NCBI RefSeq assembly: GCF_902713615.1
Contig: NC_052168.1
Span: 2,914,001-2,978,000 of the forward strand
Origin: Scyliorhinus canicula
Lineage: Eukaryota
Reading direction: 5' to 3'
DNA length: 64,000 nucleotides
Made by a program: the position numbers and the translations under genes. The notes under the pieces are model-generated. The model saw nothing but the letters and a program-made list of their open reading frames with translations, did no database searches and had not been told where the DNA came from. Of this stretch, positions 7,895 through 39,040 are shown one piece after another (positions within the stretch are counted from its first letter, which is position 1; every line of letters starts with the position of its first letter).

Positions 7895-8031
7895 ATAAAT
7901 ACTCCTCCCAGTTCGGAGGCGGCAGCCAGTACGCTTACTTCCACGAGGAGGATGAGACCAGCTTCCAGCTCGTCGATACCGCCCGCACGCAGAAGACCGC
8001 GTACCAGAGGAACCGCATGAGATTCGCTCAG
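7895..8031 (+). CDS. EIF3D: EIF3D coding exon 3
   Basis: [46 protein letters not shown]; ccgcag|...|gtaagc. Confidence 0.97.
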
Positions 8032-9035
8032 GTAAGCGCCTGGCTCTGCCTGTGTTATCAGGTGGGGAGGGGCTTCTTGACGCAGCGCACGCAGGCGAGG
8101 GTGGGAGCCCTGCATCAGATCCGAGCCTGTCCGACCGGCAGCACAAAAAAACGGGGAGAGCCGAGAGACCCATCTACTTAAACAGCATCGGTGAAGAGCG
8201 AAGGTTTCAGCTCCGTGACCTTAAGAGATGTTATGGTGTTCGGGCCGGAAAGTGGAGCTGAGTCCACAAAGGATCAGCCGTGATCTCATTAAATGGCGGA
8301 GCAGGCTCGAGGGGCCATATGGCCGACTCCTGCTCCTAGTTCTTGTGTTGGCGCAGTGGTTAGCACTGCTGCCTCATGGCATCGAGGACCTGGATTCGAT
8401 CCGGGCCCTGGGTCACTGCGGAGTTTGCGGGGCAGATGTGCTGGGTAGGTGGATTGGCCACGCTCAATTGCACTTTAATTAGAAACATTTTTTTTTAAAG
8501 AGAGATGGGGCATGTCTTAAGTGAGTGCAGAATCAGTGATCTTTTTGCTTGTGTGATTCATCAATGACAGACAAGGTTGTGGTTCGGATTCACGTTGTGT
8601 TTGGTTGGACAGTGCAGACTAGCCTGGGTAAAGGAGGTTTAACAAAGACACAGGGAGGCCTTCCTGAGCGAGAGCTGAGCTGATTAGCAGGAGGGAAGCT
8701 CGTCTTCAGATATTCCCAATGAGAAATGTCCCTCCCACTCTCCTCTAACTCATTTAAAATTCTTGTTCTGGGACCCAACCCTAACCAGAATGTGAACAAG
8801 TCCCTGTTTCCATCATTATTGACCCATGCATTTCTTTTGGGAAGAAGGGACTGCTGTCTGCATGATTTATGAAGAGGTTTTGAGAGATTAAAACTGGGCG
8901 TCTTGTCAGTACGGGAGACCTGCGGGTCGTATGTGTTACTGAACAATTTGTCCACGAGTAAAATGGCTTTTCCCGACAGATTGTACATGCTGCTGTTGAT
9001 TCAGCGCAGGTTTAACTCTGCTTTCCTTATCGCAG

Positions 9036-9124
9036 CAAAGAAACATGCGACGGGAGAAGGATCGTCGTCAGCTGCTGCAGTTTAACATGCAGACGCTGCC
9101 GAAAAGTGCCAAGCAGAAGGAAAG
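9036..9124 (+). CDS. EIF3D: EIF3D coding exon 4
   Basis: QRNMRREKDRRQLLQFNMQTLPKSAKQKER; tcgcag|...|gtgagt. Confidence 0.95.
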
Positions 9125-10194
9125 GTGAGTACACGAGTGCCGTTGCTGTTTGTCCAATCCCCTGTTCATTGCTGTCCTATTCTCCTTTCCAAAAGAAGTC
9201 CAACATTGCCATCTCTAGCCATCGCGAGTCGATAAACTCAGCTTCCCATCGAGTAATGCCCCTCCCACTATCCTCTAACTCACTTAAATGTCTTGTTCTA
9301 TGATCCAACCCTCTTTTTAATAAATTTAGAGTACCCAATTCATTTGTTCCAATTTAAGGGGCAATTTAGCGTGTTCAATCCACCTAACCTGCACATCTTT
9401 GGGTTGTGGGGGCGAAACCCACGCAGACACGGGGAGAATGTGCAAACTCCACACGAACAGTGACCCAGAGCCGGGATCGAACCCGGGACCTCGGCGCCGT
9501 GAGGCAGCAGTGCTAATCACTGCACCACCGTGCTGCCCTTACGATCCAACCCTAACCAGGATGTGAATAAGTGTAACATTGTCCCTGTTTCCATCATTAT
9601 TGACACATGCGTTTCTTTTGGGAAGAAGGGAATTTTTAAAAAATATGAATTTAGAGTGTCCAATTAATTTTTTCCAATTAAGGGGCAATTTAGTGTGGCC
9701 AATCCACCTACCCTGTACATAGAACATAGAACAGTACAGCACAGAACAGGCCCTTCGGCCCTCGATGTTGTGCCGAGCAATGATCACCCCACTTAAACCT
9801 ACGTAACCCGTATACCCGTAACCCAACAATCCCCCCCATTAACCTTACACTATGGGCAATTTAGCATGGCCAATCCACCTAACCCGCACATCTTTGGACT
9901 GTGGGAGGAAACCGGAGCACCCGGAGGAAACCCACGCACACACGGGGAGGATGTGCAGACTCCACATGTTTGGGTTGTGGGGGTGAAACCCACGCAAACA
10001 CGGGGAGAATGGCAAAACATTCCCTTCGCACAATGTGAGCTGGTATGGCGGGTGGTGCGTTGAGACTGCTGGATGCTACCTACCGCTGTTGGAAGAACAT
10101 TTATTTTTGAAATGTTGACGTGCTCCGTTTATGTGTTAATAACTCTGGGTTAATGTAGATTTTCCCCAACCTCGGCTGTGTCTCCCAATGCTTT

Positions 10195-10935
10195 TGTAAA
10201 AGATGTATTTTATTACCAGCATGGATCAAAACAGGTTACGACACATAAACACCCCGGGAAACATACTTCCCAGCAATCAACTATACACAGTACAAATTTT
10301 CCCCCTTTTTCATCCTTCACCCCCCCCCCCCCCCCCCCCCACTCCCTGTGACAAACTGCCCCTCAAACACAGTCACAAACATCCCCACCTTTCCTTAAAC
10401 CCCCGTGAAGAGCCCCTTAACTCATACTTTATCTTCTCCAACCGCAGGAAGTCATCCAGGTCACCCAACCAAGCTGCTACCCCCGGTGGTGATGCCGACC
10501 GCCACTCCAACAAAATTCGCCACCGTGCAATCAGAGAGGTGAAGGCCAAGACATCGGCCTTCCTCCTCTCCATGAGCTCCGGCTTCTCTGAAACCCCAAA
10601 TATCGCCACCAAAGGGTCCGGGTCCACCTCCTCCTCCACTATCCTGGCTAAGACCGCAAACACTCCCGCCAGAATCTTCCCAAATTTCCACAACCCCAAA
10701 ACATGTGGGCGGGGCCAGCGACTCGCACGCACATGGGGAAAGCGTGCGTCGCTGGCCCCGCCCACACCTCTCACACTCATCTGCTACCCCCTGAAAGAAC
10801 CCACTCGTTCTCACTCAAGTCGTATGCACCCTGTGCACCACCTTAAACTGTATCAGGCTCATCCTTGCACAGGAGGAGATCCCGTTTACCCTACGCAGTG
10901 CCTCACTCAGTACTCCCCAATTGATGTCTCTCCCA
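10195..10935 (-). mobile_element. 5'-truncated L1-clade LINE (ORF2 C-terminus + 3'UTR), decayed
   Basis: ORF fragments SLIQFKVVHRVH and LIARWRILLEWRSASPP..AAWL..L..FLRLEKIKY.LRGS...F..RW; AATAAA on the minus strand near 10208. Confidence 0.85.
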
Positions 10936-11141
10936 ATGCTGGGTCCTCGAGAGCGACAAACAGCATTGGGCCTTTGATCGTGAGGCTTTTTTTGGGTTGA
11001 ATAAGCCAGCTGATGCGTGGACACGAAGCTACCCAGGCAGCTCAGCCACCGGTCGGCATTTTCTTTTATCGGGAATTTTAATGGCGCACTTTGGGATGTT
11101 CCTTTCCACCTGAGCAAGTTCTGTTCCTCATCTCATTCCAG

Positions 11142-11214
11142 GGATCGCTTGCGTCTGCAGAAGAAATTTCAGAAGCAGTTTGGCGTGCGGCAGAAATGGG
11201 ACCAGAAGAATCAG
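11142..11214 (+). CDS. EIF3D: EIF3D coding exon 5
   Basis: DRLRLQKKFQKQFGVRQKWDQKNQ; ttccag|...|gtcaga. Confidence 0.96.
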
Positions 11215-11227
11215 GTCAGACTCTTAA

Positions 11228-11408
11228 TGAAATGAAAATCGCTTATTGTCACAAGTAGGCTTCAATGAAGTTACCGTGAAAAGCCCCTAGTCGCCACATT
11301 CTGGCGCCTGTTCAGGGAGGCTGGTACGGGAATTGAACCGTGCTGCTGGCCTGCCTTAGTCTGCTTTAAAAGCCAGCGATTTAGCCCAGTGTGCTAAACC
11401 AGCCCCAT
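11228..11408 (-). mobile_element. Short tRNA-derived SINE lacking the V-domain, with the same L2-like tail
   Basis: Head GGGGCTGGTTTAGCACACTGGGCTAAA...GGTTCAATTCCCGTACC; related copy at ~28330-28495 (+). Confidence 0.8.
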
Positions 11409-11880
11409 AAAACATTAGCAGAACGAGTCCCCGTCTGTGTGAAATACACAAAGTGTCTGAGTATGGGGTCACTGAGGGAGAGGGGCGCGCCGCACACTTC
11501 ACACACCAGCTGCTTGTGTGTGGCTGGTATCCGGCTTTTATCAAGTTGTGGCAGCCATCGCCACCATTATTATTCTGTGGCTCTGGATGTTTTTTGTCTG
11601 ACAACAAAATGTAAGACACCTCCAGAATGTTTAAGTACAAGTTGTTCTAAGACATGTCTTCAGCACGGGAATTATGGGAAAGTATCCACAGAAGACGGAT
11701 TTCCAATAGCATCCTGCTGAAATATTTTCCTGATGTGTTTTATTTTGTTGTGGCAATTAAGTGAGAGATCTCCAGCTGCCTCTGTTTCAATGTTTGATCC
11801 CTCCAAGAGGATCGCACGGGTTCAGTTACAATCCCCCTTTGCTGGGGTTACTAACACATCCCCCTGTTTGTCACGTACAG

Positions 11881-11996
11881 CTGAAGCCGAGAGATTCCTC
11901 TGTTGAAGTGCGGAGTGATTGGGAGGTGAAGGAAGAGATGGACTTTCCTCGGCTGATGAAGATGAGATACATGGAAGTGGCTGATCCCAGCGACAT
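11881..11996 (+). CDS. EIF3D: EIF3D coding exon 6
   Basis: LKPRDSSVEVRSDWEVKEEMDFPRLMKMRYMEVADPSD; tacag|...|gtgagt; branch-like ctaac at 11851. Confidence 0.95.
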
Positions 11997-12228
11997 GTGA
12001 GTGTTTCCCCAATAGATTTCTCCCCTTTCCCCGAGCTCCCCACCCACCCTGCCCAGGCCCAGTCACCGCAGGGTGGGCTGTATCTGCGTGCCGTATTGCC
12101 TCTGCAAACCACCTCTGCAGCTCTGCCTTTTGAGGTCTTGAGGCTCCAAAGGTGCCCTGAAGGAAAAACAACCTGCCTTTGTTTTGGCTGCAATTTCAAA
12201 ATCTCTGCTCTCATACGCACTATAGTGG

Positions 12229-12627
12229 AGTACTGAGGGAGTGCCGCACTGTCAGAGGGTCAGTACTGAGGGAGTGCCGCACTGTCAGAGGGTCAGTACT
12301 GAGGGAGTGCCCCACTGTCAGAGGGTCAGTACTGAAGGAGCGCCGCACTGTCAGAGGGTCAGTACTGAGGGAGTGCTGCACTGTCAGAGGGTCAGTACTG
12401 AGGGAGTGCTGCCCTGTCAGAGGGTCAGTACTGAGGGAGTGCTGCCCTGTCAGAGGGTCAGTACTGAGGGAGTGCTGCACTGTCAGAGGGTCAGTACTGA
12501 GGGAGTGCCGCACTGTCAGAGGGTCAGTACTGAGGGAGTGCCGCACTGTCAGAGGGTCAGTACTGAGGGAGTGCCGCACTGTCAGAGGGTCAGTACTGAG
12601 GGAGTGCTGCACTGTCAGAGGGTCAGT
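12229..12627 (+). repeat. 33-bp minisatellite GAGGGAGTGCCGCACTGTCAGAGGGTCAGTACT, ~12 copies
   Basis: Near-perfect tandem unit; 11-aa periodicity in the ORF track. Confidence 0.97.
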
Positions 12628-13064
12628 GCCGCGCTGCCAGTTTAGCTCAGTTGGCTGGACAGCTGGTTCCTGACGCAGAGCGAGGCCAGCACCGTGGGTT
12701 CAATTCCCGCACCGGCTGAGGTTATTGATGGCGGCTCCACCTTCTCAATCTTGTTCCCTGCCTGAGGTGGTGTGACCCTCGGGTTAAATCACCACCAGTC
12801 AGCTCTCCTCCTCAAAGGGAGAAAAGCAGCCTACGGTTATCTGGGTCTGTGGCGACTTTAACTTGCTGAGGGAGTGCTGCACTGTCACTTCGGATAAGAT
12901 ATTCTACGGTTAAACTTGATTCCTGTCTGCCCCATGCGGTGCACCCTTTGAAGCAGAGTCTCACAATTCTCCCAGGTGTCCAGATATTTTTCCCTTCTCC
13001 CATTCCACTAGAACAGACGAGCTGGTCACTGTCTGATTGCTGTGTTGGGTTCCTGTTCCCTCAG

Positions 13065-13197
13065 AGAGTGCTGTGGTACACTGGAGTACTATGACAAGGC
13101 GTTCGACCGAATAACAACCCGGAACGAGAAATCACTGAGAAGCATCAAGAGGATTTTCCACACTGTGACCACCACTGACGACCCTGTCATCCGTAAG
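13065..13197 (+). CDS. EIF3D: EIF3D coding exon 7
   Basis: [44 protein letters not shown]; ctcag|...|gttagt. Confidence 0.97.
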
Positions 13198-13484
13198 GTT
13201 AGTTCACAGATCAGAGCTCGTTGTAAGAGGTGTTGGGGCAGTAATGCTCGGCCAGTTAATCTTAAACCTCGCACTGATGGATGTTTGCTGGAGCTGAAAC
13301 CCATGAAGGGAGATGGAGCCGAGGTACGTGGTCGGCCCCACAATCTAACTGAAGAGCAGAGAAGGTGCTGAGTGAGTTCCCCCCTGTTCTACCTTGTGCA
13401 GTGTGGCCAGTCTTCATTTGAGTGTCGTTTTTTTGCTGTGCAAGCTCCAGTCAGCATTACTGCGTGACAGGATGGTCATCCTTC

Positions 13485-15190
13485 TAGTAACGTAGAAAAT
13501 GGGAGCAGGACGAGGCCTTTCTGTCTTTCGAGCCTGTTCAGCCGTTCATTATCATCATGGCTGATCATCTAACTCAATAGCCAAATCCCGCCTTCCCCCT
13601 CCATATCCTTTGATCCCCTTTGGGCAGCACAGTAGCACAAGTGGCTAGCACTCTGGCTTCACAGTGCCAGGGTCCCAGGTTCGATTCTCGGCTTGGGTCA
13701 TTGTTTGTGCGGAGTCTGCACGCTCTCCCCGTATCTGCGTGGGTTTCCTCCGGGTGCTCCGGTTTCCTCCCACGGTCCAAAGAAGTGCAGGTTAGGTAGA
13801 TTGGCCATGATAAATTGCCCTTAGTGACCAAAACCGTTAGGAGGGTTTATCGGGTTACGGGGATAGGGTGGCAGTGAGGGCTTAAGTGGGTTGGTGCAGA
13901 CTCGATGGGCTGAATGGCCTCCTTCTGCACGGTATGTTCTCTGTTTGCCCTAAGTGCTGTATCTCACTGCTTCTTGAAAACATACAATGTTTTGGACTCA
14001 ACTATTTCCTGTGGTAACGAATTTCACCAGCTCACCACTCTCTGGGTGAAGAAATTTCTCCTCGTCTCTGTCCTAAATGGTCTACCCCATATCCTCAGAC
14101 TGTGACCCCTGGTTCTGGACGCCCCCGCCATCGGGAACATCCTTCCAGCATCTACCCTGTCCAGTCCGATTAGAATTTTCTAGGTTTCTATGAGATTCCC
14201 CCCTCATTCTTCTGAACTCCAGCGAGAACAATCCTAACCGATTCAATCTCTCCTCGTACGTCAGTCCTGCCATCTCAGGAATCAGTCTGGTAAACCTTGG
14301 TTGCACTCTCTCTAGCGCAGATAAGGAGACCAAAACTGCCCACAATACTCCATGTGTGGCCTCACCAAGGCCCTGTATATTTGCAGCAAGACATCCCTGC
14401 TCCTGTACTCTAATCCTCTCGCTATGAAGGTCAACATACCATTGGCCTTCTTTACCGCCTGCTGTACCTGCATGCTTACCTTCAGTGACTGGTGTACGAG
14501 GACACCCAGGTCTCGTTGCACATTCCCCTCTCCTAATTTATGATCATTCAGATAATCTGCCGCCTTGTTTTTGCTACCAAAGTGGATAACCTCGTATTTA
14601 TCCAAATTATACTGTATCTGCCATTCATTTGCCCACTCGCTCAACTTGTCCAAATCACATTGAAGCATCTCTGCATCCTCCTCACAGCTCACCCTCCCAC
14701 CCAACTTGGTGTCATCTGCAAATTTGGAGATATTTCATTTTGTTCCATCATCTAAATCATTAATATAAATTGTGAATAGCCAGGGTCCCAGCACCGATCC
14801 CTGCGGTACCCCATTAGTCACTGCCTGTCATTTGGAAAAGACCTGTTAATTCCTACTCTTTGTTTCCACTGCCAACCAGTTTTCTATCCATCCCCACACA
14901 CTACCCCTAATCCCATGCGATTTAATTTTACACATTAATCTCTTATGCGGAACTGTGTGAAAAGATTGCTGAAAATCCAAATAAAGCACATTGGCTGGCT
15001 CCCTCTTGTCAACTTTCCGAGTCACATCCTCAAAAAATTCCAATCTATTTGTCAAGCATGATTTCCCTTTCGTAAATCCATGCTGACTCTGTCCGATCCT
15101 GCCTCTGTTTCCCAAGTGCTCTGCTATAAAATCTTTGATTAATGGATTCGAGAATTTTCCCCACTACTGACATCAGGTAGTGCTGGTCTA
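13485..15190 (-). mobile_element. CR1/HER1-like LINE, decayed ORF2 3' half, interrupted by a SINE
   Basis: SQHGFTKGKSCLTN, LQCDLDKLSEWANEWQ, RDLGVLVHQSLK, LVRPHMEYCGQFWSPYLR. Confidence 0.92.
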
Positions 15191-15536
15191 TAATTTATCA
15201 TTTGTCCACTCGGTGTGCATGAAGCTGTGTGCAATGTCCAGAACAGTCAGCCATCTGTTTGCACTGTTGCAGTCTCCGCTGATGGCGTTTCCTTGATAGT
15301 GTTAGGTTGATGTTGCTGCACTTGTCCTCCGGAACCCTGGCTGTCTTGCGTCTCCGTTTATTTGTGCTCTGTCAGAAACTGGAATTAGTGTGCTGGCCAA
15401 AGTCCGAACTCCGTGATCTCCCTCCCTCCCGTAAACGGAGTTTGAGGTTGTTGGCTGTTTCTGTCTAATTGAACGAGAGCTATTCCCTGTGCCGTGGTTT
15501 TGGAGTGAGTGGTTGATTGTCTCCGTGTGTTAACAG

Positions 15537-15684
15537 CTGGCCAAGTCTCAGGGGAATGTGTTTGCAACAGACGCCATCCTGGCCACTCTGATGTGCTGCA
15601 CCAGATCCGTCTATTCCTGGGACATCATCGTGCAACGGGTCGGATCCAAGCTCTTCTTCGACAAACGTGACCACTCGGACTTTG
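15537..15684 (+). CDS. EIF3D: EIF3D coding exon 8
   Basis: [49 protein letters not shown]; aacag|...|gtaagg. Confidence 0.97.
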
Positions 15685-15722
15685 GTAAGGAGAAAATTGC
15701 CAATGCAGGCATTGTGTCAGAT

Positions 15723-16545
15723 AACATAAGAACTAGGAGCAGGAGTAGGCCATCTGGCCCTTCGAGCCTGCTCCGCCATTCAATGGGATCATGGCTGATC
15801 TTTTGTGGATTCAGCTCCACTTTCCGGCCCGAACACCATAACCCTTAATCCCTTTATTCTTCAAAAAACTATCTATCTTTACCTTAAAAACATTTAATGA
15901 AGAAGCCTCAACTGCTTCACTGGGCAAGGAATTCCATAGATTCACAACCCTTTGGGTGAAGAAATTCCTCCTAAACTCAGTCGTAAATTTACTTCCCCTT
16001 ATTTTGAGTCTATGCCCCCTAGTTCTGCTTTCACCCGCCAGTGGAAACAACCTGCCCGCATCTATCCTATCTATTCCCTTCATAATTTTACATGTTTCTA
16101 TAAGATCCCCCCCTCATCCTTCTAAATTCCAACGCGTACAGTCCCAGTCTACTCAACCTCTCCTCATAATCCAACCCCTTCAGCTCTGGGATTAACCTAG
16201 TGAATCTCCTCTGCACACCCTCCAGTGCCAGTACGTCCTTTCTCAAGTATGGAGACCAAAACTGAACACAATACTCCAGGTGTGGCTTCACTAACACCTT
16301 ATACAATTGCAACATAACCTCCCTAGTCTTAAACTCTATTCTTCTAGCAATGAAGGACAAAATTCCATTTGCCTTCTTAATCACCTGTAAGCCAACTTTC
16401 TGTGACTCATGCACTAGCACACCCGGGTCTCTCTGCAGAGCTGCATGTTTTAATATTTAATCATTTAAATAATAATCCCGTTTGCTGTTATTCCTACCAA
16501 AATGGATAACCTCACATTTGTCAACATTGTATTCCATCTGCCATT
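15723..16545 (-). mobile_element. CR1/HER1-like LINE 3' end
   Basis: LVKPHLEYCVQFWSPYLRKD, RTRGHRLK, FRRNFFTQRVVNLWNSLP; tail repeat TTCTTATGTTA. Confidence 0.92.
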
Positions 16546-16687
16546 GCATTTTACCCCTCCCCCTCTGTGCCGTGCACAATAAAATATCCCAGCACTGAGA
16601 ATCTTTTTTTATTGTCCGGCTGATGATTGGGTCTGATGGTCAGAGGGTGCCGCGGCTGCTTGTTAACTTGCTCTTTTTATCATCCAG

Positions 16688-16818
16688 ACCTCCTAACGGT
16701 CAGCGAAACCGCGAACGAGCCCCCACAAGATGAAGGGAATTCTTTCAATTCTCCCCGTAACTTGGCCATGGAGGCCACTTACATCAACCACAACTTTTCT
16801 CAGCAATGCCTGAAGATG
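16688..16818 (+). CDS. EIF3D: EIF3D coding exon 9
   Basis: [44 protein letters not shown]; tccag|...|gtgcga. Confidence 0.97.
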
Positions 16819-17034
16819 GTGCGAAAAGGGACACCAAGCGACGTAAGCAACTGGTCTGTAAACCCTCGAGGTTTAGCTTAAAAGGTGCCAAAGCGGCTGC
16901 GCTCCCATCCACCCCCGCCAAACCCAGTGATAGTTGCCACGCTAAGAGGGAGGAGCCAACTCCGACAACACGATGCACTAGTGGCAATGTCCGCCATGGT
17001 GACATTGGATACCTCCTTCAAAACCTGGAGACAT

Positions 17035-17262
17035 AGGACAGCACGGTGGCGTTGTGGTTAGCACTGCTGCCTCACAGCGCTGAGGTCCCAGGTTCGACCC
17101 CGGCTCTGGGTCACTGTCCGTGTGGAGTTTGCACATTCTCCCCGTGTCTGCGTGGGTTTCGCCCCCACAACCCAAAGATGTGCAGGGTAGGTGGATTGGC
17201 CACACTAAATTGCCCCTTAATTGGAAAAAATGAATTGGGTACTCTAAATTTGTTTTTTAAAA
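17035..17262 (+). mobile_element. Short V-SINE with A/T-rich tail and target-site duplication
   Basis: Internally shortened V-domain (GGGTTTCGCCCCCACAACCCAAAGA) and tail CCCCTTAATTGGAAAAAATGAATTGGGTACTCTAAATTT. Other copies at ~9313-9538, 29417-29652, 42283-42509, 47725-47952 (-) and 30958-31187, 39262-39485, 46481-46705, 54379-54588, 56121-56335 (+). Confidence 0.9.
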
Positions 17263-17559
17263 AGCTGGAGACAGGACGGTACGTGCGACTAAGAAACTTC
17301 CTCCTCAAGAAGGCAGCACAACACTCCCTGCTGGACAGACTTCTGACCAAGGGCGGACTAAGGGACAGTAACTACATCAAATGCAAGGTTTTGTTCCTGT
17401 GTTTCACGGGCTTTTTTTGGGATTAGGCAGTTTCTCCGGTTCGGTCATTTTTGACAAGCGGAGCCTTTCCTGGGTTTGGAAAGGGTGAAATATTATCTGG
17501 CGTTTGGGTCCTTTGGTTATGTGGGTGTTGGAGGGACTCGCTGTCCTCGGGGTGGTCAG

Positions 17560-19612
17560 CACGGCAGTCAGCGCAACATCCCAGTGGCGGTCAGCGCGGA
17601 GTCCCAGTGGCGGTCAGCGCGGAGTCCCAGTGGCGGTCAGCACGGAGTCCCAGTGGCGGTCAGCGCGGAGTCCCAGTGGCGGTCAGCGCGGAGTCCCAGT
17701 GGCGGTCAGCGCGGAGTCCCAGTGGCGGTCAGCGCGGAGTCCCAGTGGCGGTCGGCGCACCGTCCCAGTGGCGGTCGGCGCAGCGTCCCAGTGGCGGTCG
17801 GCGCAGCGTCCCAGTGGCGGTCAGCGCAGCGTCCCAGTGGCGGTCAGCGCAGCGTCCCAGTGGCGGTCAGCGCAGCGTCCCAGTGGCGGTCAGCGCAGCG
17901 TCCCAGTGGCGGTCAGCGCAGCGTCCCAGTGGCGGTCAGCGCAGCGTCCCAGTGGCGGTCAGCGCAGCGTCCCAGTGGCGGTCAGCGCAGCGTCCCAGTG
18001 GCGGTCAGCGCAGCGTCCCAGTGGCGGTCAGCGCAGCGTCCCAGTGGCGGTCAGCGCAGCGTCCCAGTGGCGGTCAGCGCAGCGTCCCAGTGGCGGTCAG
18101 CGCAGCGTCCCAGTGGCGGTCAGCGCAGCGTCCCAGTGGCGGTCAGCGCAGCGTCCCAGTGGCGGTCAGCGCAGCGTCCCAGTGGCGGTCAGCGCAGCGT
18201 CCCAGTGGCGGTCAGCGCAGCGTCCCAGTGGCGGTCAGCGCAGCGTCCCAGTGGCGGTCAGCGCAGCGTCCCAGTGGCGGTCAGCGCAGCGTCCCAGTGG
18301 CGGTCAGCGCAGCGTCCCAGTGGCGGTCAGCGCAGCGTCCCTGCGGCTGTCAGCGCAGCGTCCCTGCGGCAGTCAGCGCAGCGTCCCTGCGGCAGTCAGC
18401 GCACCGTCCCTGCGGCAGTCAGCGCACCGTCCCTGCGGCAGTCAGCGCACCGTCCCTGCGGCTGTCAGCGCACCGTCTCTGTGGCGGTCAGCGCGGCGTC
18501 CCTGCGGCGGTCAGCGCACCGTCTCTGTGGCGGTCAGCGCACCGTCCCTGCGGCGGTCAGCGCGGCGTCCCTGCGGCGGTCAGCGCACCGTCTCTGTGGC
18601 GGTCAGCGCACCGTCCCTGCGGCGGTCAGCGCGGCGTCCCTGCGGCGGTCAGCGCACCGTCCCAGCGGCGGTCAGCGCACCGTCTCTGTGGCGGTCAGCG
18701 CACCGTCCCTGCGGCGGTCAGCGCACCGTCCCTGAGGCGGTCAGCGCGGCGTCCCTGAGGCGGTCAGCGCACCGTCCCTGAGGCGGTCAGCGCGGAGTCC
18801 CAGCGGCGGTCAGCGCACCGTCCCTGAGGCGGTCAGCGCGGCGTCCCTGAGGCGGTCAGCGCGGCGTCCCAGCGGCGGTCAGCGCACCGTCCCTGCGGCG
18901 GTCAGCGCACCGTCCCTGAGGCGGTCAGCGCGGAGTCCCAGCGGCGGTCAGCGCACCGTCCCTGCGGCGGTCAGCGCACCGTCCCTGCGGCGGTCAGCGC
19001 ACCGTCCCTGAGGCGGTCAGCGCGGAGTCCCAGCGGCGGTCAGCGCACCGTCCCTGAGGCGGTCAGCGCGGCGTCCCTGAGGCGGTCAGCGCGGCGTCCC
19101 TGAGGCGGTCAGCGCGGCGTCCCTGAGGCGGTCAGCGCGGCGTCCCTGAGGCGGTCAGCGCGGCGTCCCTGAGGCGGTCAGCGCACCGTCCCTGCGGCGG
19201 TCAGCGCACCGTCCCTGCGGCGGTCAGCGCACCGTCCCTGCGGCGGTCAGCGCACCGTCCCTGCGGCGGTCAGCGCACCGTCCCTGCGGCGGTCAGCGCA
19301 CCGTCCCTGCGGCGGTCAGCGCACCGTCCCTGCGGCGGTCAGCGCAGCGTCCCTGCGGCGGTCAGCGCACCGTCCCTGCGGCGGTCAGCGCACCGTCCCT
19401 GCGGCGGTCAGCGCACCGTCCCTGCGGCGGTCAGCGCACCGTCCCTGCGGCGGTCAGCGCACCGTCCCTGCGGCGGTCAGCGCACCGTCCCTGCGGCGGT
19501 CAGCGTGGCGGTCAGCGCACCGTCCCTGCGGCGGTCAGCGCACCGTCCCTGCGGCGGTCAGCGCGGCGTCCCTGCGGCGGTCAGCGCGGCGTCCCAGTGG
19601 CGGTCAGCGCGC
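17560..19612 (+). repeat. 23-bp GC-rich minisatellite GTCCCAGTGGCGGTCAGCGCAGC, ~89 copies, in an EIF3D intron
   Basis: Direct inspection; variant units occur in blocks. Confidence 0.98.
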
Positions 19613-19707
19613 TGTCTCTTGGGCCCGGGTATTTTTCTTCAGTTATTTTAGCTGCTGCCTTGTCATGTGACCCGGTTTACACTCTCCTTTATCTCTCTCT
19701 CCTCTAG

Positions 19708-19793
19708 GGCATTGAGAAATACAAGTTCCCAAATCCAAACCCTTTTGTGGAGGACGATGTGGACAAGAATGAGGTGGCTTCAGTGGGATACAG
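19708..19793 (+). CDS. EIF3D: EIF3D coding exon 10
   Basis: GIEKYKFPNPNPFVEDDVDKNEVASVGYR; ctctag|...|gtggga. Confidence 0.96.
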
Positions 19794-20269
19794 GTGGGAA
19801 AGGAAGCTGCTCACTCCGAGAGCACGTGAATGGAGTTTGTGTGAACTCACTGGATTTGATCCTCTGATTAATAACAATGTGAAGGATGGTTTGGGCAAGT
19901 GACTTAATGCGATACAAGATGATGCTACCAGCAGCAAATCCATAGAATCCTTACAATGCAGAGGAAGGCCAATCGGCCCATCGAGTCTGCACCGACCCTG
20001 CGAAAGAGCATCCTACCTAGGCACACTCCCCCGCCCTATCCCTGTAACCCCACGCAGACACGGGAGAATGTGCAAACTCCACGCGGACAGTGACCCGGGG
20101 CCAGGATCGAACCTGGGTCCTTGGCGCTGTGAGGCAGCAGTGCTAACCACTGTGCCACCGTGCTGCCCCATAGGACTTTCGAAATGGAAAGAAAAGTACA
20201 GGGGGTGCCTGTAGAGAGACTTTCGGGTTCAGGTTCAAAGATTTTTAAAATGCCAGGAACAAATGTAGA

Positions 20270-20885
20270 AAGTAATCAAAAACGCTAATGGCTTTTATAT
20301 CGAGAGCATTGGAATATAAAGACACGGGTGATGCTGCAACTTTACAAAACCCTGGTTAGACTCCACTTGGAGTCACTGGGAGCAGTTCTGGGCGCCGCAC
20401 CTTAGGAAGGATATTTTGGCCTTGGAGGGAGTGCAAGGCAGGTTTACAAGAATGATACCTGGACTAATGGGGTTGTTACAAAGAGAGATTACACAAATTA
20501 GGCCTGTTTTCGCTAGAATTTAGAAAGTTACGGTGATCTGATCGAAGTATTCAAGATATTAACAGGGAAAGACAGGGTGGATAAAGATAAACTATTTCCA
20601 CTGGGTGGAGATTCTAAAACTCGGGGACAGAGTCTAAAAATTAGGACCAGTCCGTTCAGGGGAGATGTTGGGAAGAACTTCTTCACTCAAAGGGTGGTAG
20701 AGGTTTGGAATTCTCTCCCACACACGGCAGCTGAAGCTGGAACAGTTGCTCATTTTCAATCTGAGATTTTTGTTAAGCGAAGATATTAAGGGATATGGGC
20801 CAACGGCAGGTCTATGGAGTTGGGTCACAGATCAGCCACAATCTCATTGAATGGCGAGACGGGCTCGAGGGGCTGTTCCTATGAG
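20270..20885 (+). mobile_element. CR1-like LINE 3' fragment
   Basis: KTRGQSLKIR..FRGDVGKNFFTQRVVEVWNSLP. Further decayed CR1 pieces at ~5960-6560, 7020-7305, 24300-25225, 33390-33960 and 50860-52860. Confidence 0.85.
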
Positions 20886-21454
20886 ACACCTGTGTGCAGC
20901 AATGGGTGCTGAGGTCCTGAGTAGGGACAGCATCATGTGACGATAAGGACTGGTGCCTTGGATCAAACGGCTCTGAGACTCACGATGGAATCCACCACCT
21001 GCCGGCAGTCCCACAATGTTTTTAAGATATTCATTCTCGAGATGTGGGCGTCGCTGGCTCGACCAGCATTTATTACACCTCCCTGGTTGCCCTAAGCTGC
21101 GGCTATTTCAGGGGACAGTTAAGATTCGGTCACGCTGGTGTGGACCCAGCATCACTCTTGGGCCCATACTGGGTAAAGGAAGGCAACTTCCCTTACCGCC
21201 ATTTTCTTAATGATCATGGACACTTTACTAATCCCAGCCTTGTATTTCCCCATTTTGAGTTCACATACCCCGCAGAGATGGCGGGATTTAAACTCTTGCT
21301 TTCTGATCTATTTGTTCTGTATCCTGACCACACCTTTGGTGTGGTCGTTATAATCCCACTGACTACGTTGATTAAATCTCAAGTGGCTGATGTCCTTTTG
21401 ACTGTTGCAGCGTGTCTCCGCCTCACTCAGTTCCCTCTGAATCGCTTCCTGCAG

Positions 21455-21584
21455 GTATCGGAGGTGGAAGCTGGGAGAGGACATCGACCTGATTGTGCGA
21501 TGTGAGCATGATGGAGTCATGACGGGTGCCAACGGCGAAGTGTCTTTCATCAATGTCAAAACTCTGAACGAGTGGGACTCACGG
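21455..21584 (+). CDS. EIF3D: EIF3D coding exon 11
   Basis: YRRWKLGEDIDLIVRCEHDGVMTGANGEVSFINVKTLNEWDSR; ctgcag|...|gtaggg. Confidence 0.97.
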
Positions 21585-21651
21585 GTAGGGACCAAGATCT
21601 CACACGGTACTGCAATCTCCGAGTGATTGCCGTAAAAGCTGCTGTCACCAA

Positions 21652-22320
21652 AGAGTGTCAGTATTTACAGGGAGTCCCCGGGGAGTGTGTCAGTGTTTAC
21701 AGGGGGTCCCCGGGGAGTGTGTCAGTATTTACAGGGGGTCCCGGGGAGTGTGTCAGTATTTACAGGGGGTCCCCGGGGAGTGTGTCAGTATTTACAGGGG
21801 GTCCCGGGGAGTGTGTCAGTATTTACAGGGGGTCTCCGAGGAGTGTGTCAGTATTTACAGGTGGTCCCCGGAGAGTGTGTCAGTATTTACAGGGGGTCCC
21901 CGGAGAGTGTGTCAGTATTTACAGGGGGTCCCCGGAGAATGTGTCAGTATTTACAGGGGGTCCCCGGGGAGTGTGTCAGTATTTACAGGGGTTTGCCGGG
22001 GAGTGTGTCAGTATATACAGGGGGTCCCTGGGGAGTATGTCAGTATATACAGGGGGTTCCCCGGGGATGGTGTGTCAGTATTTACAGCGGACCCCCCGGG
22101 GATGGTGTGTCAGTATTTACAGGGGGGGGGGGGTCCCCGGGGATGGTGTGTCAGTATTTACAGGGGGTCCCCGGGGAGTGTGTCAGTATTTACAGGGAGT
22201 CCCCGGGGAGTGTGTCAGTATTTACAGCAGGTCTCCCGGGGTTGGTGTGTCAGTATTTACAGGGGATCTCTGAGGAGTGTGTCAGTATTTACAGGGGGTC
22301 CCTGGGGAGTGAGTCAGAAT
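21652..22320 (+). repeat. 31-34 bp minisatellite GAGTGTGTCAGTATTTACAGGGGGTCCCCGGG, ~21 copies
   Basis: Direct inspection. Confidence 0.95.
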
Positions 22321-22558
22321 TATCAGGGGGCCCGGCTTGAATGGTTGGTGAGTGAGCTCTTGGCTGGGTAATCCAGCAGTTTCCATGTTTGGATCATTTG
22401 TTAAGTGTTTGTAAGAACATGTCTGGCCTCTTCGAGTCGGTTGTGGAGTTGATGTTAATAGTAAGGTCGGGGGCTCCTGGTGTATTGCTGCGAGCTGTAG
22501 TCTATCTGGGGAGCTGCAGACTATCTGGGGGACATTGTATTTCTGTTTCCCTGTGCAG

Positions 22559-22701
22559 TACTGTAATGGGGTGGACTGGCGGCAGAAACTGGATTCACAG
22601 AGGGGGGCAGTCCTTGCCACGGAGTTGAAGAATAACAGCTACAAGCTCGCTCGATGGACCTGCTGTGCATTGCTGGCTGGAACGGAGTATCTGAAACTCG
22701 G
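22559..22701 (+). CDS. EIF3D: EIF3D coding exon 12
   Basis: [48 protein letters not shown]; gtgcag|...|gtaagg. Confidence 0.97.
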
Positions 22702-22947
22702 GTAAGGATGCTGGACTTTGGCGCGTGAGATTTGGAAATTTCGAACAGTTTTTTTTTTTAAAGTTCTGAATGTAGATGGATTTTGGTCCACGAGTTTCAA
22801 TTAATTGTGTTTAATCCCAAACTTCATGTCTGAGATATGGTTCCTCTTTGCTGCAAATATTCTTCTCAGCCGCGGCTAAGTCTAAGATATTGGGTTCAAG
22901 CCCCATCCAGGGCCAGAACCACAGACTGTCAGACCCAGTGCATTATG

Positions 22948-23264
22948 GAGGGCTCGCTGCACTGTCAGAGGGTCAGTACTGAGGGAGTGCCGCACTGTCA
23001 GAGGGTCAGTACTGAGGGCTCGCTGCACTGTCAGAGGGTCAGTACTGAGGGAGTGCTGCACTGTCAGAGGGTCAGTACTGAGGGAGTGCTGCACTGTCAG
23101 AGGGTCAGTACTGAGGGAGTGCCGCACTGTCAGAGGGTCAGTACTGAGGGAGTGCTGCACTGTCAGAGGGTCAGTGCTGAGGGAGTGCCGCACTGTCAGA
23201 GGGTCAGTACTGAGGGAGTGCTGCACTGTCAGAGGGTCAGTACTGAGGGAGTGCCGCACTGTCA
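22948..23264 (+). repeat. Same 33-bp minisatellite, ~9.5 copies, inside a Deu-domain-like SINE remnant
   Basis: Tandem unit as at 12229, flanked by TGGGTTCAAGCCCCA and GGGGAGTTCCTGCTGATGTCCTGGGGTCAATATT. Confidence 0.95.
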
Positions 23265-23559
23265 GTTTTTCAGGTAGATGCAAAAGACCCGGTTGTTATC
23301 GGAGGAAGATTTGGGGAGTTCCTGCTGATGTCCTGGGGTCAATATTTAGATTTTTGTATGAAACAAAATTTCAGTATCTTGTTCCCATCTGCAGCCGTCG
23401 CTTCCTCCTACAATTCACAAACTCTTAAAATACCAGCAATAGTTGGGCTGTAGATGCCGACTCTGACCTGTCCTTATTCGGTCAGTGCAGTGTGGATCAC
23501 AACGGTGAATGTGTGACTGTTGGCTAGTGGATCCGTGCTCTCACTCCCTCTCTCTGTTT

Positions 23560-23659
23560 TTTTTTAATAAACAATTTTATTGAGGTAGTTTTTGGCTTTA
23601 TAAACAGTTACAGACATCATCAGAAAGGAAGCAAAAAAGGCAAAAATGTGCAAACATCT
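23560..23659 (-). mobile_element. 100-nt antisense retroposed insert (L1-type 3' end) with 16-bp TSD in the polypyrimidine tract of an EIF3D acceptor
   Basis: TSD CTCCCTCTCTCTGTTT at 23544-23559 and 23660-23675; minus strand ends AATAAAATTGTTTATT(A)n. Confidence 0.88.
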
Positions 23660-23679
23660 CTCCCTCTCTCTGTTTGAAG

Positions 23680-23872
23680 GTACGTTTCCCGATTCCACAT
23701 CAAGGACTCCTCTCGTCACGTGGTCCTGGGCACCCAACAGTTCAAGCCCAACGAGTTTGCCAGTCAGATTAACCTGAGTATGGAGAACGCCTGGGGAATC
23801 CTGCGCTGTGTCATTGACATCTGCATGAAGTTGGAGGAGGGCAAATACCTTATCCTGAAAGACCCTAACAAG
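23680..23872 (+). CDS. EIF3D: EIF3D coding exon 13
   Basis: [64 protein letters not shown]; ttgaag|...|gtgagc. Confidence 0.97.
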
Positions 23873-25495
23873 GTGAGCTCTGCTGGGGTGGGTGTGTGTG
23901 TGTGAGTGGCTCCACCTCTGGGTCATACAGGAGGGACCAGTTGCTACAGCATCTGGTTTATGCTGTGCACCGACCGGTTTAAGGAGAAGCTGCATGAAAG
24001 AGGGATAGACGGTTAGGCGCGAGGCAGTAGAGTGGGTCATGAGGCTCGTGGAGAATAAACATTGACCCATTGGCTCGAATGGCCTGTGACGTGAATTCTG
24101 TGCCCTGTATTCGCCGGGGAACTGCGCGCAGGGGTTTTTCACTGTGGGTCCAATTTCAGTAGGAAGCTGAATGATCCGGCACATTGGATGTAGTTATCTG
24201 CATCCTCTTGTCAGTTTTAATTCTGCGCAGCCTTGCACTCTGTAACAATTGGAACGCTGAGCTGTGAATTCAGAGGCCGAAAAAGCATCTGCAGTTCATG
24301 CTTGCCTTCATCGGACGGGGCATTGAGTTTAAAAATTAGCAAGTCATGTTGCAGCTTTATAGAATATAGTGTTCAATTCTGGTCGCCACACTACCAGGAG
24401 GATGTGGAGGCTTTGGAGAGGGTGCAGTAAAGATTTACCAAGATGTTGCCTGGTTATGGAGGGCATTAGCTATGAGGAGAGGTTGAATAAACTCGCAACG
24501 ATGTAGGTTGAGGGGCGACCTGATAGAGGTCTACAAGATTGAGGGGTATGGACAGAGTGCATAATCAGAAGTTTTTTCCCAGGGTGGAAGAATCAATTAC
24601 TAGGGGGCGTAGGTTTACGGTACGAGGGGCAAGGTTTACAGGGGATGTACGAGGGAAGTTTTCTTTTACACAGAGGGTAGTGGGAGCCTGGAACTCGTGG
24701 CCGGGGGAGGTGGTAGAAGCAGATGCGATAGGGCAGCACGGTAACACAGTGGTTAGTACCGTTGCTTCACAGCAGCAGGGTCCTAGGTTCGATTCCCGGC
24801 TTGGGTCACTGTCTGTGCGGAGTCTGCATGTTCTCCCCGTGTCTGCGTGGGTTTCCTCCGGGTGCTCCGGTTTCCTCCCACAGTCCAAAGATGTGCGGGT
24901 TAGGTGGATTGGCCGTGATAAATTGCCCTTGGATTAGGTGGGGTTGCTGGGTTACAGGGATAGGGTGGAAGTGTGGGCTTAAGCAGGGTGCTCTTTCTGA
25001 GGGCTGGTGCAGACTCGATGGGCTGAATGGCCTCCTTCTGCACTGTTTTGTTTTTTAAAATTCTAGTGACTTTTAAGGGGTGTCTTGACAAATACATGAA
25101 TAGGGTGGGAATAGAGGGATAGGAACTCTGGAAGGGTAGGGGGTTTGAGTGCAAGCGGGCAGCATGGTCCATGCAGGCTTGAAGGGCCGTAGTGCCTGTT
25201 ACTGTGCTGTAACTTTCTTGTTTATATGACTGAGGCAGGAATGAATGGCGGTGGGTGGGGGGTTGGGTGGGGTGGGGGGATGTGCCTGGTTTATTTTTTG
25301 GCAGTAGGCTGTGATCGTTGGGAGTGGTGGTGAGGGTTCCCACCTGTGGCCATGGTGTGTGCAGGCGAGGTGAGAGCCACTGTGTTGAGTGGAAGCTCCC
25401 TCCTGGTGCTGTGAACACTGGCTGGTGTGTTGATCTGTTTGAGCTGTGCTGGTTTGCTGCTGAACCCGTCCTTCCGTCTCTCTCCCTGTCCGCAG

Positions 25496-25600
25496 CAAGT
25501 CATCCGTGTCTACAGCCTCCCCGATGGCACCTTCAGCTCTGAAGAAGATGAGGATGATGATGATGACGATGACGACGAAGAGGAGGATGGCGCGCAGTGA
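25496..25600 (+). CDS. EIF3D: EIF3D coding exon 14 (acidic tail); ends at TGA 25598-25600 if not spliced further
   Basis: QVIRVYSLPDGTFSSEEDEDDDDDDDDEEEDGAQ*; acceptor ccgcag. The 14 exons sum to 1653 nt (550 aa plus stop). The 3' boundary is uncertain (possible donor GTGAGG at 25597). Confidence 0.85.
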   Translation, partial: QVIRVYSLPDGTFSSEEDEDDDDDDDDEEEDGAQ

Positions 25601-26173: not shown

Positions 26174-27065
26174 TCTCTGCCTTGCTCTCTCTCTCGGTCT
26201 CTGCCTCCCTCTCTCTCTCTGCCTCCCTCTCTCTCTCGGTCTCTGCCTCCCTCTCTCTCTCGGTCTCTGCCTCCCTCTCTCTCTCGGTCTCTGCCTTCCT
26301 CTCTCTCTCTCGGTCTCTGCCTTCCTCTCTCTCTCTCGGTCTCTGCCTTCCTCTCTCTCTCTCGGTCTCTGCCTTCCTCTCTCTCTCTCGGTCTCTGCCT
26401 TCCTCTCTCTCTCTCGGTCTCTGCCTTCCTCTCTCTCTCTCGGTCTCTGCCTTCCTCTCTCTCTCTCGGTCTCTGCCTTCCTCTCTCTCTCTCGGTCTCT
26501 GCCTTCCTCTCTCTCTCTCGGTCTCTGCCTTCCTCTCTCTCTCTCGGTCTCTGCCTTCCTCTCTCTCTCTCGGTCTCTGCCTCCCTCTCTCTCTCTCGGT
26601 CTCTGCCTCCCTCTCTCTCTCTCTCGGTCTCTGCCTCCCTCTCTCTCNNNNNNNNNNNNNNNNNNNNNNNNNNNNNNNNNNNNNNNNNNNNNNNNNNNNN
26701 NNNNNNNNNNNNNNNNNNNNNNNNNNNNNNNNNNNNNNNNNNNNNNNNNNNNNNNNNNNNNNNNNNNNNNNNNNNNNNNNNNNNNNCTCTCTCGGTCTCT
26801 GTCTCTGCCTCCCTCCCTCTCTCTCTCGGTCTCTGTCTCTTCCTCGCTCTTTCTCTCTCGGTCTCTGCCTCCCTCTCTCTCTCTCTCGGTCTCTGCCTCC
26901 CTCTCTCTCTCTCTCTCTCGGTCTCTGCCTCCCTCTCTCTCTCTCTCGGTCTCTGTCTCTGCCTCCCTCCCTCTCTCTCTCGGTCTCTGTCTCTTCCTCG
27001 CTCTTTCTCTCTCGGTCTCTGCCTCGCACTTTCTCTTGCTCTGCATCGCTCTCTCTCTCTCGGAC
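26174..27065 (+). repeat. CT-rich compound micro/minisatellite (CGGTCTCTGCCTTCC(TC)n) with a 139-N gap at 26648-26786
   Basis: Direct inspection. Confidence 0.97.
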
Positions 27066-31389: not shown

Positions 31390-31439
31390 GAGCTCCTGCC
31401 TGTCGGACTGTGAGAGACACAACTTGCCACTGCTGCGGG

Positions 31440-31712
31440 ATGGCTCACCTCGGCCTGCCAATGATCATTGGGGTGACTGTGATTTTCTACCTTCTGTCCA
31501 ACACGCCAGCCTGCGGCTGGTACAGGCAGGCATCCAGCCCTCGTTATTACTCAGTTGGGCGAGCATCTGGGCTACTGCAGGGCATCCGCCGGTCTGCATA
31601 CGTCCGGCGAGGGGGCGTCAAAGAGGGCAGCACCCGAAACCCAGCAAAGCTTGGAGACTTCTTGGCAGAGGCTTGGAAGCGCCCGCTGATTGCGGAATGG
31701 GACTCTGCGACG
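31440..31712 (+). CDS. Neuropeptide B/W-family precursor, coding exon 1 (signal peptide + mature peptide)
   Basis: [26 protein letters not shown]|[31 protein letters not shown]: a hydrophobic signal peptide, then the WY..Y.VGRA.GLL.G.RRS.Y motif of NPB/NPW with two dibasic sites. Phase-0 donor GTGAGA at 31713. Confidence 0.95.
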
Positions 31713-32191
31713 GTGAGATTTCCCTCTCTTGCCTGCCCAGGTTAATAATGCCTGGCACAGTAACACCGACAGTCCCAGGTATTGAGTAGCACAGAGAGTC
31801 CCAGGGACTGGAATGTGTGGGTTCTGCTGATTCGGGGCAGTAGCCGCTGTTCACTGTTACTGCCTCCAGCATCCCGGGATTAGTGAAGGAGGATAGATCC
31901 TGCCCACTGTCAGAATAGAATGTGTGCATCTTTGCACGAGAGTTTGCACTTTTTTGCCTGTGCGTGTCTGCATGAGTGTGTGCACAAGAATCCGTGTATG
32001 CATGATTATCCCTAGGAGCAAATCAAACTGCCCCATGTTCAGGGGAGTGAAGGCAGATTGCAGGGGGAAGTAGGGGCACTGGTTGTGAATGAGTTAACTC
32101 CGTGAGGATAATGTTAACTCCCGGTTTGTGTATCCTAGATCTCGAGAGTGAGCACTTATGTATTTTTTAATAAGAGAACGTTTTATTGTAG

Positions 32192-32323
32192 ATGTGTGTG
32201 AAGGATGTCACTCCCCAGTTAAGCAGCTGTGCAGCCATCACTGAAGACCCATTGATCTTCAACTGTAAGGCCAATGTCCGCCTGACCGTGGATGTCAGTG
32301 GCTGCAACCCCATGGACCCATGA
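32192..32323 (+). CDS. Neuropeptide B/W-family precursor, coding exon 2 (4-Cys C-terminal domain)
   Basis: ttgtag|MCVKDVTPQLSSCAAITEDPLIFNCKANVRLTVDVSGCNPMDP*, resembling the NPB C-terminus (CV.DV.PNL..C...CKANV.L....C). In phase with exon 1; precursor is 134 aa. Missed by the ORF track (<60 aa). Confidence 0.93.
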   Translation: MCVKDVTPQLSSCAAITEDPLIFNCKANVRLTVDVSGCNPMDP

Positions 32324-32495: not shown

Positions 32496-32536
32496 ATTAA
32501 AAGGGAATATTGAATATTCAGTTTATGTGAAATAAA
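32496..32536 (+). terminator. Polyadenylation signals of the NPB/W-like gene (ATTAAA 32496, AATAAA 32531)
   Basis: Hexamers ~170-210 nt after the stop codon in an AT-rich 3'UTR. Confidence 0.7.
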
Positions 32537-37944: not shown

Positions 37945-38444
37945 NNNNNNNNNNNNNNNNNNNNNNNNNNNNNNNNNNNNNNNNNNNNNNNNNNNNNNNN
38001 NNNNNNNNNNNNNNNNNNNNNNNNNNNNNNNNNNNNNNNNNNNNNNNNNNNNNNNNNNNNNNNNNNNNNNNNNNNNNNNNNNNNNNNNNNNNNNNNNNNN
38101 NNNNNNNNNNNNNNNNNNNNNNNNNNNNNNNNNNNNNNNNNNNNNNNNNNNNNNNNNNNNNNNNNNNNNNNNNNNNNNNNNNNNNNNNNNNNNNNNNNNN
38201 NNNNNNNNNNNNNNNNNNNNNNNNNNNNNNNNNNNNNNNNNNNNNNNNNNNNNNNNNNNNNNNNNNNNNNNNNNNNNNNNNNNNNNNNNNNNNNNNNNNN
38301 NNNNNNNNNNNNNNNNNNNNNNNNNNNNNNNNNNNNNNNNNNNNNNNNNNNNNNNNNNNNNNNNNNNNNNNNNNNNNNNNNNNNNNNNNNNNNNNNNNNN
38401 NNNNNNNNNNNNNNNNNNNNNNNNNNNNNNNNNNNNNNNNNNNN
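37945..38444. other. Assembly gap (500 N)
   Basis: Run of exactly 500 N, suggesting a fixed-size scaffolding join. Confidence 0.99.
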
Positions 38445-38760: not shown

Positions 38761-39040
38761 CGGCACTCACCCAGCTGACGGCCCTGGCTATGGTCTGCGG
38801 CTGCCGGATGAAGGTGAGCGGGTCGAAGGCTCCCCCGGCCCTGCCGGCTCCATAAGCCGCTCCTGGTGCAGTCTCCATCTTCCTGCAGCCTCCTCCTGGC
38901 GGCGGGCACAGCGAGGGGGGGCGAGCGGGGCGGGAGCGCGCAGGCGGCGCGCGCCGAGAGGCGGGGCCGGGGCCGAGGGGGGCGTGGCCCGGGCGGGGCC
39001 GGCACCGACGGGAGCCGCGCGGTGCCGAAGGGGCTGGGGT
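38760..39040 (-). promoter_or_regulatory. CpG island / GC-box promoter of SYNGR1
   Basis: Very GC-rich, with several GGGCGG/GGCGGGG boxes around exon 1. Confidence 0.75.
38771..38878 (-). CDS. SYNGR1: Synaptogyrin (most like synaptogyrin-1), coding exon 1 only
   Basis: METAPGAAYGAGRAGGAFDPLTFIRQPQTIARAVSW then phase-0 donor GTGAGT. Resembles SYNGR1 AYGAGKAGGAFDP...RQP.TILR.VSW and is divergent from RPL3 as in human. Later exons were not found. Confidence 0.88.

Follow-up and report, generated by a model that had tools for sequence, protein, structure and literature searches.

The NPB/NPW system is implicated in feeding, pain and stress and, in fish, in female mating behaviour. It has been described as consisting of two ligands and two receptors (PMC5207463, PMC4992253, PMC6684226). 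In gar and teleosts, the NPB gene is surrounded by the slc26a11/sgsh/gnav1/pcyt2 block, and the teleost genes npba and npbb are teleost-specific genome duplicates of one NPB locus (PMC6684226). On a larger scale, the regions carrying SSTR2 (17q), SSTR3 (22q) and SSTR5 (16p) constitute a 2R paralogon (PMC3560075).

Here we analyse a neuropeptide gene, referred to by the working name NPX, located at 31440-32323 on the plus strand of a 64-kb stretch of Scyliorhinus canicula DNA (the window, meaning the whole stretch that was analysed). No description of a third NPB/NPW-family member was found in the openly available full texts that we searched, and NPX seems to be undescribed in the literature. 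Our main reading, to which we assign a probability of roughly 0.7, is that NPX is a functional third gene of the NPB/NPW family whose ancestral position is downstream of EIF3D, and that its most likely origin is as a 2R ohnolog, which tetrapods and other sampled lineages have since lost.

Gene structure and likeness to NPB and NPW

Translation of the two NPX exons yielded a 134-aa prepropeptide with no frameshift or internal stop, in which the cysteines of the C-terminal tail occupy residues 93, 104, 116 and 129 (Table 1). The initial annotation of this DNA had described a complete two-exon precursor of this length, with a signal peptide, a Trp-initiated mature peptide, two RR sites and a four-Cys tail, together with a GT-AG intron, a TATA box and a polyadenylation signal; all of these elements were found in the sequence, the intron exactly where it had been placed. 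Both exons passed the 27-bit gathering cutoff of the Pfam family NPBW (PF15180), exon 1 with 69 bits and exon 2 with 30.3 bits over model positions 79-117, and these matches far exceed chance. A tBLASTn search with the 134-aa product found no second copy of NPX in the 64-kb window, and the 4.6 kb upstream contained no oestrogen-response element of the kind reported from NPB promoters of fish, even with up to one mismatch allowed. About 45 bp after the polyadenylation signal begins a minisatellite with a unit of ~33-36 bp (GGGAGAATGTGGGACTCGCTCCCACAGGGAGTG-like), which spans 32580-33340 of the window.

Table 1. Positions of NPX, its predicted peptide elements, its neighbours and the assembly gaps in the window
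Feature	Coordinates	Strand	Basis
EIF3D, multi-exon, upstream neighbour	7864..25597	+	ORF listings; Pfam eIF-3_zeta (PF05091) on exons 15534-15683 and 23678-23872
Assembly gap of 139 N separating EIF3D from NPX	26648..26786	.	both flanks collinear with S. torazame
TATAAA box, ~50 bp 5' of the start codon	31384..31389	+	sequence reading; putative function
NPX coding exon 1 (91 codons, from the signal peptide through the mature peptide to the linker)	31440..31712	+	translation; Pfam NPBW E 4e-19
Signal peptide, residues 1-26, ending P-A-C-G before Trp27	31440..31517	+	hydrophobic core, small residues at -1/-3; predicted cleavage site
Predicted mature peptide, 23-mer (31518-31586) or 29-mer (31518-31604), start Trp-Tyr-Arg	31518..31604	+	alignment with NPB and NPW peptides
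Two dibasic RR sites, 31587-31592 and 31605-31610 (residues 50-51 and 56-57)	31587..31610	+	alignment
Phase-0 GT-AG intron, 479 nt	31713..32191	+	donor GT at 31713, acceptor AG ending 32191
NPX coding exon 2 (43-aa C-terminal domain, four Cys, stop included)	32192..32323	+	translation; Pfam NPBW E 3.9e-7
AATAAA polyadenylation signal, ~210 nt 3' of the stop	32531..32536	+	sequence reading; putative function
500-N scaffold gap between NPX and the SYNGR-like/RPL3 part	37945..38444	.	preceded by 33-bp tandem array
Synaptogyrin-like first exon, 36 aa, putative SYNGR1	38771..38878	-	ORF
RPL3 exon, N-terminal 64 aa	62888..63079	+	Pfam Ribosomal_L3 E 2.4e-30; best PDB matches vertebrate uL3, 127-130 bits

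The position of the intron and its phase, 0, are common to shark NPX, bichir NPX, NPB (Callorhinchus, S. canicula and Polypterus), cichlid npbb and NPW (Callorhinchus and Discoglossus), and in three other sharks exon 1 likewise comprises 273 nt and is followed by a phase-0 intron. In every aligned member of the family the mature peptide begins right after the signal peptide, as it does in NPX with Trp27-Tyr28 after PACG, and the family core x-V-G-R-A-[AS]-G-L-L is present in NPX as well.

NPX and NPB have the same two coding exons with the intron just before the Cys domain, the same arrangement of signal peptide and Trp-Tyr, the same peptide core, the same RR sites giving 23- and 29-residue forms (predicted for NPX) and the same C-terminal CVKD...C...C...C domain. 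At 22 of the 29 mature residues NPX is identical to the NPB of catshark, chimaera, bichir, gar or coelacanth. In contrast, all shark NPX sequences contain LLQG, with Gln, where NPB has LLSG; residues 5-10 of NPX look NPW-like; and NPX evolves much faster than NPB. With NPW, NPX has in common membership of PF15180, the intron position and, at NPX residues 7-10, the S-P-R-Y of tetrapod NPW. The two differ in the residues before VGR, which are H-T in NPW and Y-S in NPX, and in the segment that is LL[MLI]G in NPW, usually accompanied by Trp30, whereas NPX has LLQG and lacks Trp30. NPW precursors are also longer, ranging from 193 to 295 aa in chimaera, lungfish and coelacanth, compared to 134 aa for NPX.

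NPX orthologs and the canonical NPB and NPW loci

A protein search with exon 1 returned proteins named 'neuropeptide B-like' in S. torazame (95% identity), Mustelus, Heterodontus and Hemiscyllium, and a profile search added Cetorhinus and Rhincodon, bringing the NPX orthologs to six other shark species. The initial annotation had allowed for an automated label of this name, which indeed already exists, on the NPX orthologs of relatives; in sharks and reedfish such labels conceal a distinct orthology group. No protein identical to the window product was returned, though S. canicula proteins are part of the searched collection, and NPX may be unannotated in the window's own genome.

The NPX orthologs occupy a conserved position. 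In S. torazame, Heterodontus and Rhincodon, NPX comes directly after EIF3D (558 aa) and shares its strand; the Mustelus gene is on a small unplaced contig. In the window, the last coding exon of EIF3D ends near 25597 and the NPX start codon follows ~5.8 kb further on, also on the same strand, a measured distance that agrees with the ~6 kb first proposed, with Pfam confirming the EIF3D exons. The linkage of the two genes across the 139-N gap is upheld by the collinear S. torazame chromosome assembly, one continuous stretch of which aligns to both gap flanks at 85-87% identity.

Outside the sharks, an exhaustive profile search of cluster representatives, combined with cluster look-ups, revealed a divergent NPX relative in the reedfish Erpetoichthys, and the same 90% cluster contains a Polypterus model of 696 aa that bears the name 'EIF3D factor'. 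In Polypterus the locus has the order CutA, EIF3D fused to an NPBW domain, and ADSL, and the Erpetoichthys gene adjoins ADSL. On Polypterus senegalus CM029064.1 (L010 10001-40621) the gene model thus joins EIF3D to the downstream NPBW-domain gene and hides the neuropeptide gene; this fusion is probably a read-through or an annotation artefact.

Since the adjacency and orientation of EIF3D and NPX are common to sharks and to the earliest-branching ray-finned fishes, the arrangement predates the split between them, and NPX was already present in the jawed-vertebrate ancestor, directly downstream of EIF3D. The proposal that the gene was retained in cartilaginous fish consequently holds for sharks but needs widening, since bichirs carry NPX too. 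The protein and profile search matches included no NPX from rays, chimaera, gar, sturgeon, teleosts or sarcopterygians, so that the model calls for several independent losses.

A search seeded with skate NPB returned canonical 'neuropeptide B' in many cartilaginous fishes, among them S. canicula, S. torazame, Mustelus, Carcharodon, Stegostoma, Chiloscyllium, Pristiophorus, several rays and Callorhinchus, as well as in Polypterus. Both NPX and canonical NPB are therefore present in S. torazame, Mustelus and Polypterus; in S. torazame NPB is on a 170-Mb record and NPX on a 43.5-Mb record, and in Polypterus the two are on CM029071 and CM029064, respectively. The NPB locus of Callorhinchus reads SLC26A11-SGSH-NPB-G-alpha, in agreement with the block known from gar and teleost NPB (PMC6684226), and a G-alpha gene adjoins NPB in S. 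canicula and Rhinoraja as well. NPX, in contrast, lies beside EIF3D and away from the SLC26A11-SGSH-NPB-GNAV1/PCYT2 block.

The Callorhinchus NPW-type gene encodes a 193-aa precursor and has as its downstream neighbour a gene of PDZ-PDZ-EBP50_C architecture, whose first PDZ domain best matches human NHERF2 (108 bits, compared to 100 bits for NHERF1). In human, NHERF2 (SLC9A3R2) is the downstream neighbour of NPW. NPX adjoins EIF3D rather than NHERF2 and is placed outside the NPW clade. At the Discoglossus NPW locus there was no neighbouring gene within 10 kb.

The three loci with distinct synteny that were anticipated for cartilaginous fish are thus present: NPB at SLC26A11-SGSH-G-alpha, an NPW-type gene beside an NHERF2-like gene (in Callorhinchus) and NPX at EIF3D. 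The broader suggestion of a three-ligand NPBWR system was borne out as far as these three loci across cartilaginous fish are concerned; no single species was seen to hold all three genes, as no shark NPW and no chimaera NPX appeared among the search matches.

These comparisons also bear on whether NPX could be a relocated shark ortholog of NPW or NPB, moved by translocation and adding no member to the family. Such a history would be in keeping with the lack of a shark NPW among the matches, with the NPW-like peptide residues 5-10 and with the NCBI label 'neuropeptide B-like', yet we consider it highly improbable. Its NPB version is already contradicted by the canonical NPB that these shark genomes carry in its usual place, and the simple translocation that the initial annotation had named as a possible refutation finds no place beside NPB genes on another chromosome in S. 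torazame and Polypterus and an NPX outside the NPB clade of the best tree. As for NPW, the Callorhinchus gene beside the NHERF2-like gene groups with NPW (97/90) and NPX does not. Moreover, the EIF3D adjacency recurs in bichirs, which have NPB, indicating that it is the ancestral position.

A resemblance exists to teleost npba and npbb, which likewise provide an NPB-type ligand gene beyond the mammalian set, and the cichlid npbb protein is among the closest non-shark matches to NPX. NPX differs in being much older and in lying in a different member of the paralogon. Teleost 'neuropeptide B-like' matches were considered as NPX orthologs and rejected; the cichlid gene, the nearest teleost match to NPX, adjoins G-alpha (gnav1), which identifies it as npbb.

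Extending our main reading, we tentatively picture a jawed-vertebrate ancestor with NPB, NPW and NPX, followed by independent losses of NPX in several lineages. In elasmobranchs, NPX might possibly replace a lost NPW and might pair with an NPBWR-type receptor of its own that was retained and has gone unrecognised.

Sequence constraint, transcripts and the predicted peptide

Seven sharks and two bichirs have kept an intact NPX reading frame with its splice sites, as well as the Trp-Tyr start of the peptide, its VGR-x-SGLL core and the four cysteines. The mature peptide is nevertheless far more variable than the almost invariant NPB peptide, which is identical across bichir, gar and coelacanth. 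The first dibasic site is missing from the NPX of Hemiscyllium, Cetorhinus, Rhincodon and the bichir, and the second from that of Heterodontus; at least one of the two is kept in each species with an ortholog, and both are never lost. Judged from the aligned sequences, the lower conservation of the mature peptide and the dibasic losses suggest relaxed constraint.

Values of dN/dS ranged from 0.27 to 0.59 among four sharks and were below 1 everywhere, being lowest over the mature peptide (0.24), 0.75 over the C-terminal tail and 0.5-0.6 in comparisons with Rhincodon. Between S. canicula and S. torazame, the NPX coding sequence is 96.3% identical and the intron 84.6%. NPX is shown by these data to be under purifying selection.

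Word-index searches with the whole locus and with the intron alone provided indirect evidence that spliced NPX RNA exists. Three runs that we guess to be RNA (X5, X10 and X11) contained 0.37, 0.21 and 0.16, respectively, of the words sampled from 31300-32600, and for the intron words the fraction was 0.00 in all three. In other runs, locus words and intron words were both present.

The variability of the peptide relative to NPB, the disappearance of one or the other dibasic site in several species, the dN/dS values for the tail and against Rhincodon, and the lack of an identical protein from the window's own genome in the protein search might be expected of a decaying or non-functional gene, one that is still transcribed but has a peptide without signalling activity. 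We give this view very little credence, given that frame, splice sites, Trp-Tyr, VGR-x-SGLL and four cysteines remain intact over more than 400 My of divergence, that dN/dS stays below 1 throughout and is lowest over the mature peptide itself, and that some RNA runs contain the exons without the intron.

With NPX read as a functional gene, we infer the processing of its peptide and its receptor from the likeness to NPB and NPW. The 134-aa precursor would enter the secretory pathway, where signal peptidase would expose the N-terminal Trp-Tyr, and prohormone convertases would then cut at RR50-51, at RR56-57 or at both, releasing a 23- or 29-residue peptide; the C-terminal four-Cys domain would be made alongside it, as happens with NPB precursors. 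From the conserved N-terminal half of the peptide we predict that it is most likely an agonist of NPBWR-type, Gi-coupled receptors. The gene thus gives a concrete peptide to synthesise and to try on shark and bichir receptors.

Phylogeny, paralogon and surroundings of NPX

A maximum-likelihood tree of 59 sequences was built from 136 kept alignment columns without an outgroup, and in it the stems of the NPX groups are long. An NPW clade that includes the Callorhinchus gene (97/90) and a clade of all gnathostome NPB and cyclostome sequences (91/80) both exclude NPX, and shark NPX (99/99) and bichir NPX (100/100) each form a well-defined clade. The two NPX clades are not sisters in the best tree and were joined in only 6% of bootstrap trees, and forcing them into a single clade costs 0.43 lnL (p-AU 0.41). 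Forcing shark NPX together with chondrichthyan NPB costs 10.6 lnL and is not rejected by the AU test (p 0.165). The precursor tree envisaged in the initial annotation accordingly agrees with it in placing NPX outside the NPB and NPW clades, but does not unite shark and bichir NPX and leaves room for a link of shark NPX to chondrichthyan NPB. Sequence phylogeny is compatible with a third group and not decisive, and synteny carries the argument. In the same tree, NPB-like sequences from lamprey and hagfish fall among those of gnathostome NPB, the hagfish pair inside chondrichthyan NPB, probably as an effect of extreme NPB peptide conservation and long branches.

We take the human map to place EIF3D, RPL3, SYNGR1 and ADSL at 22q12-q13, SGSH and SLC26A11 at 17q25, and NHERF2 at 16p13.3. 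Given these presumed positions of the neighbouring genes, NPX, NPB and NPW each lie in a different member of one 2R paralogon, which is the signature expected of ohnologs, and we infer that a 2R whole-genome duplication is the likeliest, though not proven, origin of NPX. NPX occupies the chr22-type copy of the paralogon, NPB the 17q25-type copy and NPW the 16p13.3-type copy; sharks and bichirs have kept NPX, and tetrapods and other sampled lineages would have lost it. Of the claim that NPX is the third ohnolog from a SYNGR1/RPL3 block, the distinct EIF3D locus and the coexistence with NPB stand firmly, and the 2R origin stands as likely, given the AU p of 0.165 for the link to chondrichthyan NPB.

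On the far side of NPX, the surroundings are less complete than the EIF3D-SYNGR1-RPL3 block that had been proposed. EIF3D and an RPL3 exon are both present, and SYNGR1 is represented by one putative first exon that matched no entry in the tools used, giving no Pfam match and no useful ESM Atlas match. This open reading frame resembles the first exon of human SYNGR1. Synaptogyrin exons 2-4 were found neither in the window nor in the 10 kb downstream of the NPX orthologs; either the exons that should accompany this lone synaptogyrin-like exon fall in the unassembled sequence that the 500-N gap stands for, or the scaffold was joined incorrectly here. The PDB matches of the RPL3 exon include no vertebrate RPL3L chain and thus do not separate RPL3 from RPL3L; we take the exon to be RPL3 from its very high uL3 similarity and from the known differences of RPL3L. 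As measured across the 500-N gap, NPX is ~6.5 kb from the synaptogyrin-like exon and 30 kb from RPL3, and since both lie beyond this gap, their linkage to NPX depends on scaffolding. A synaptogyrin and an RPL3 paralog are presumably also part of the NPW neighbourhood, human NPW lying near SYNGR3 and RPL3L.

Another possible origin of NPX is an ancient small-scale or transposed single-gene duplication of NPB or NPW that preceded the split of cartilaginous and bony fishes, its chr22-type position being due to chance and not to 2R. The phylogeny is too weak to order NPB, NPW and NPX; the mature NPX peptide is nearer to NPB (22/29) than to NPW (19-21/29); and in the tree the NPX genes of sharks and bichirs emerge beside the NPB clade rather than as a symmetric third group, all of which would suit such a duplicate. 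We regard this origin as unlikely, however, since the copy would have had to land in the third member of the very paralogon that already held NPB and NPW (PMC3560075). The nearness of NPX to a synaptogyrin-like exon and to RPL3 also corresponds to the pattern expected if a whole block had been duplicated.

If NPX is indeed a 2R ohnolog, the SSTR2/3/5 paralogon gains a clear example of ohnologs being lost differentially. With a third ancient ligand, the ancestral state reconstructed for the NPB/NPW system changes.

Several repeats are distributed over the window. A 33-bp tandem repeat family, whose translation reads repeated ...CQRVSTEGV[PL]H..., is present three times, in EIF3D introns at 12161-12700 and 22834-23425 and downstream of NPX at 36203-37944. 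A very GC-rich tandem array at 17427-19700, also in an EIF3D intron (GC 0.71 over 18-20 kb), is open in several frames purely through repetition. The interval between the synaptogyrin-like exon and RPL3 contains, at 57800-62000, a retroelement whose minus-strand open reading frames are of reverse-transcriptase, integrase and Gag-like type. The third of the 33-bp arrays reaches up to the 500-N gap, and an expansion of it is seen at the corresponding position in S. torazame too (L001 15.1-17.4 kb).
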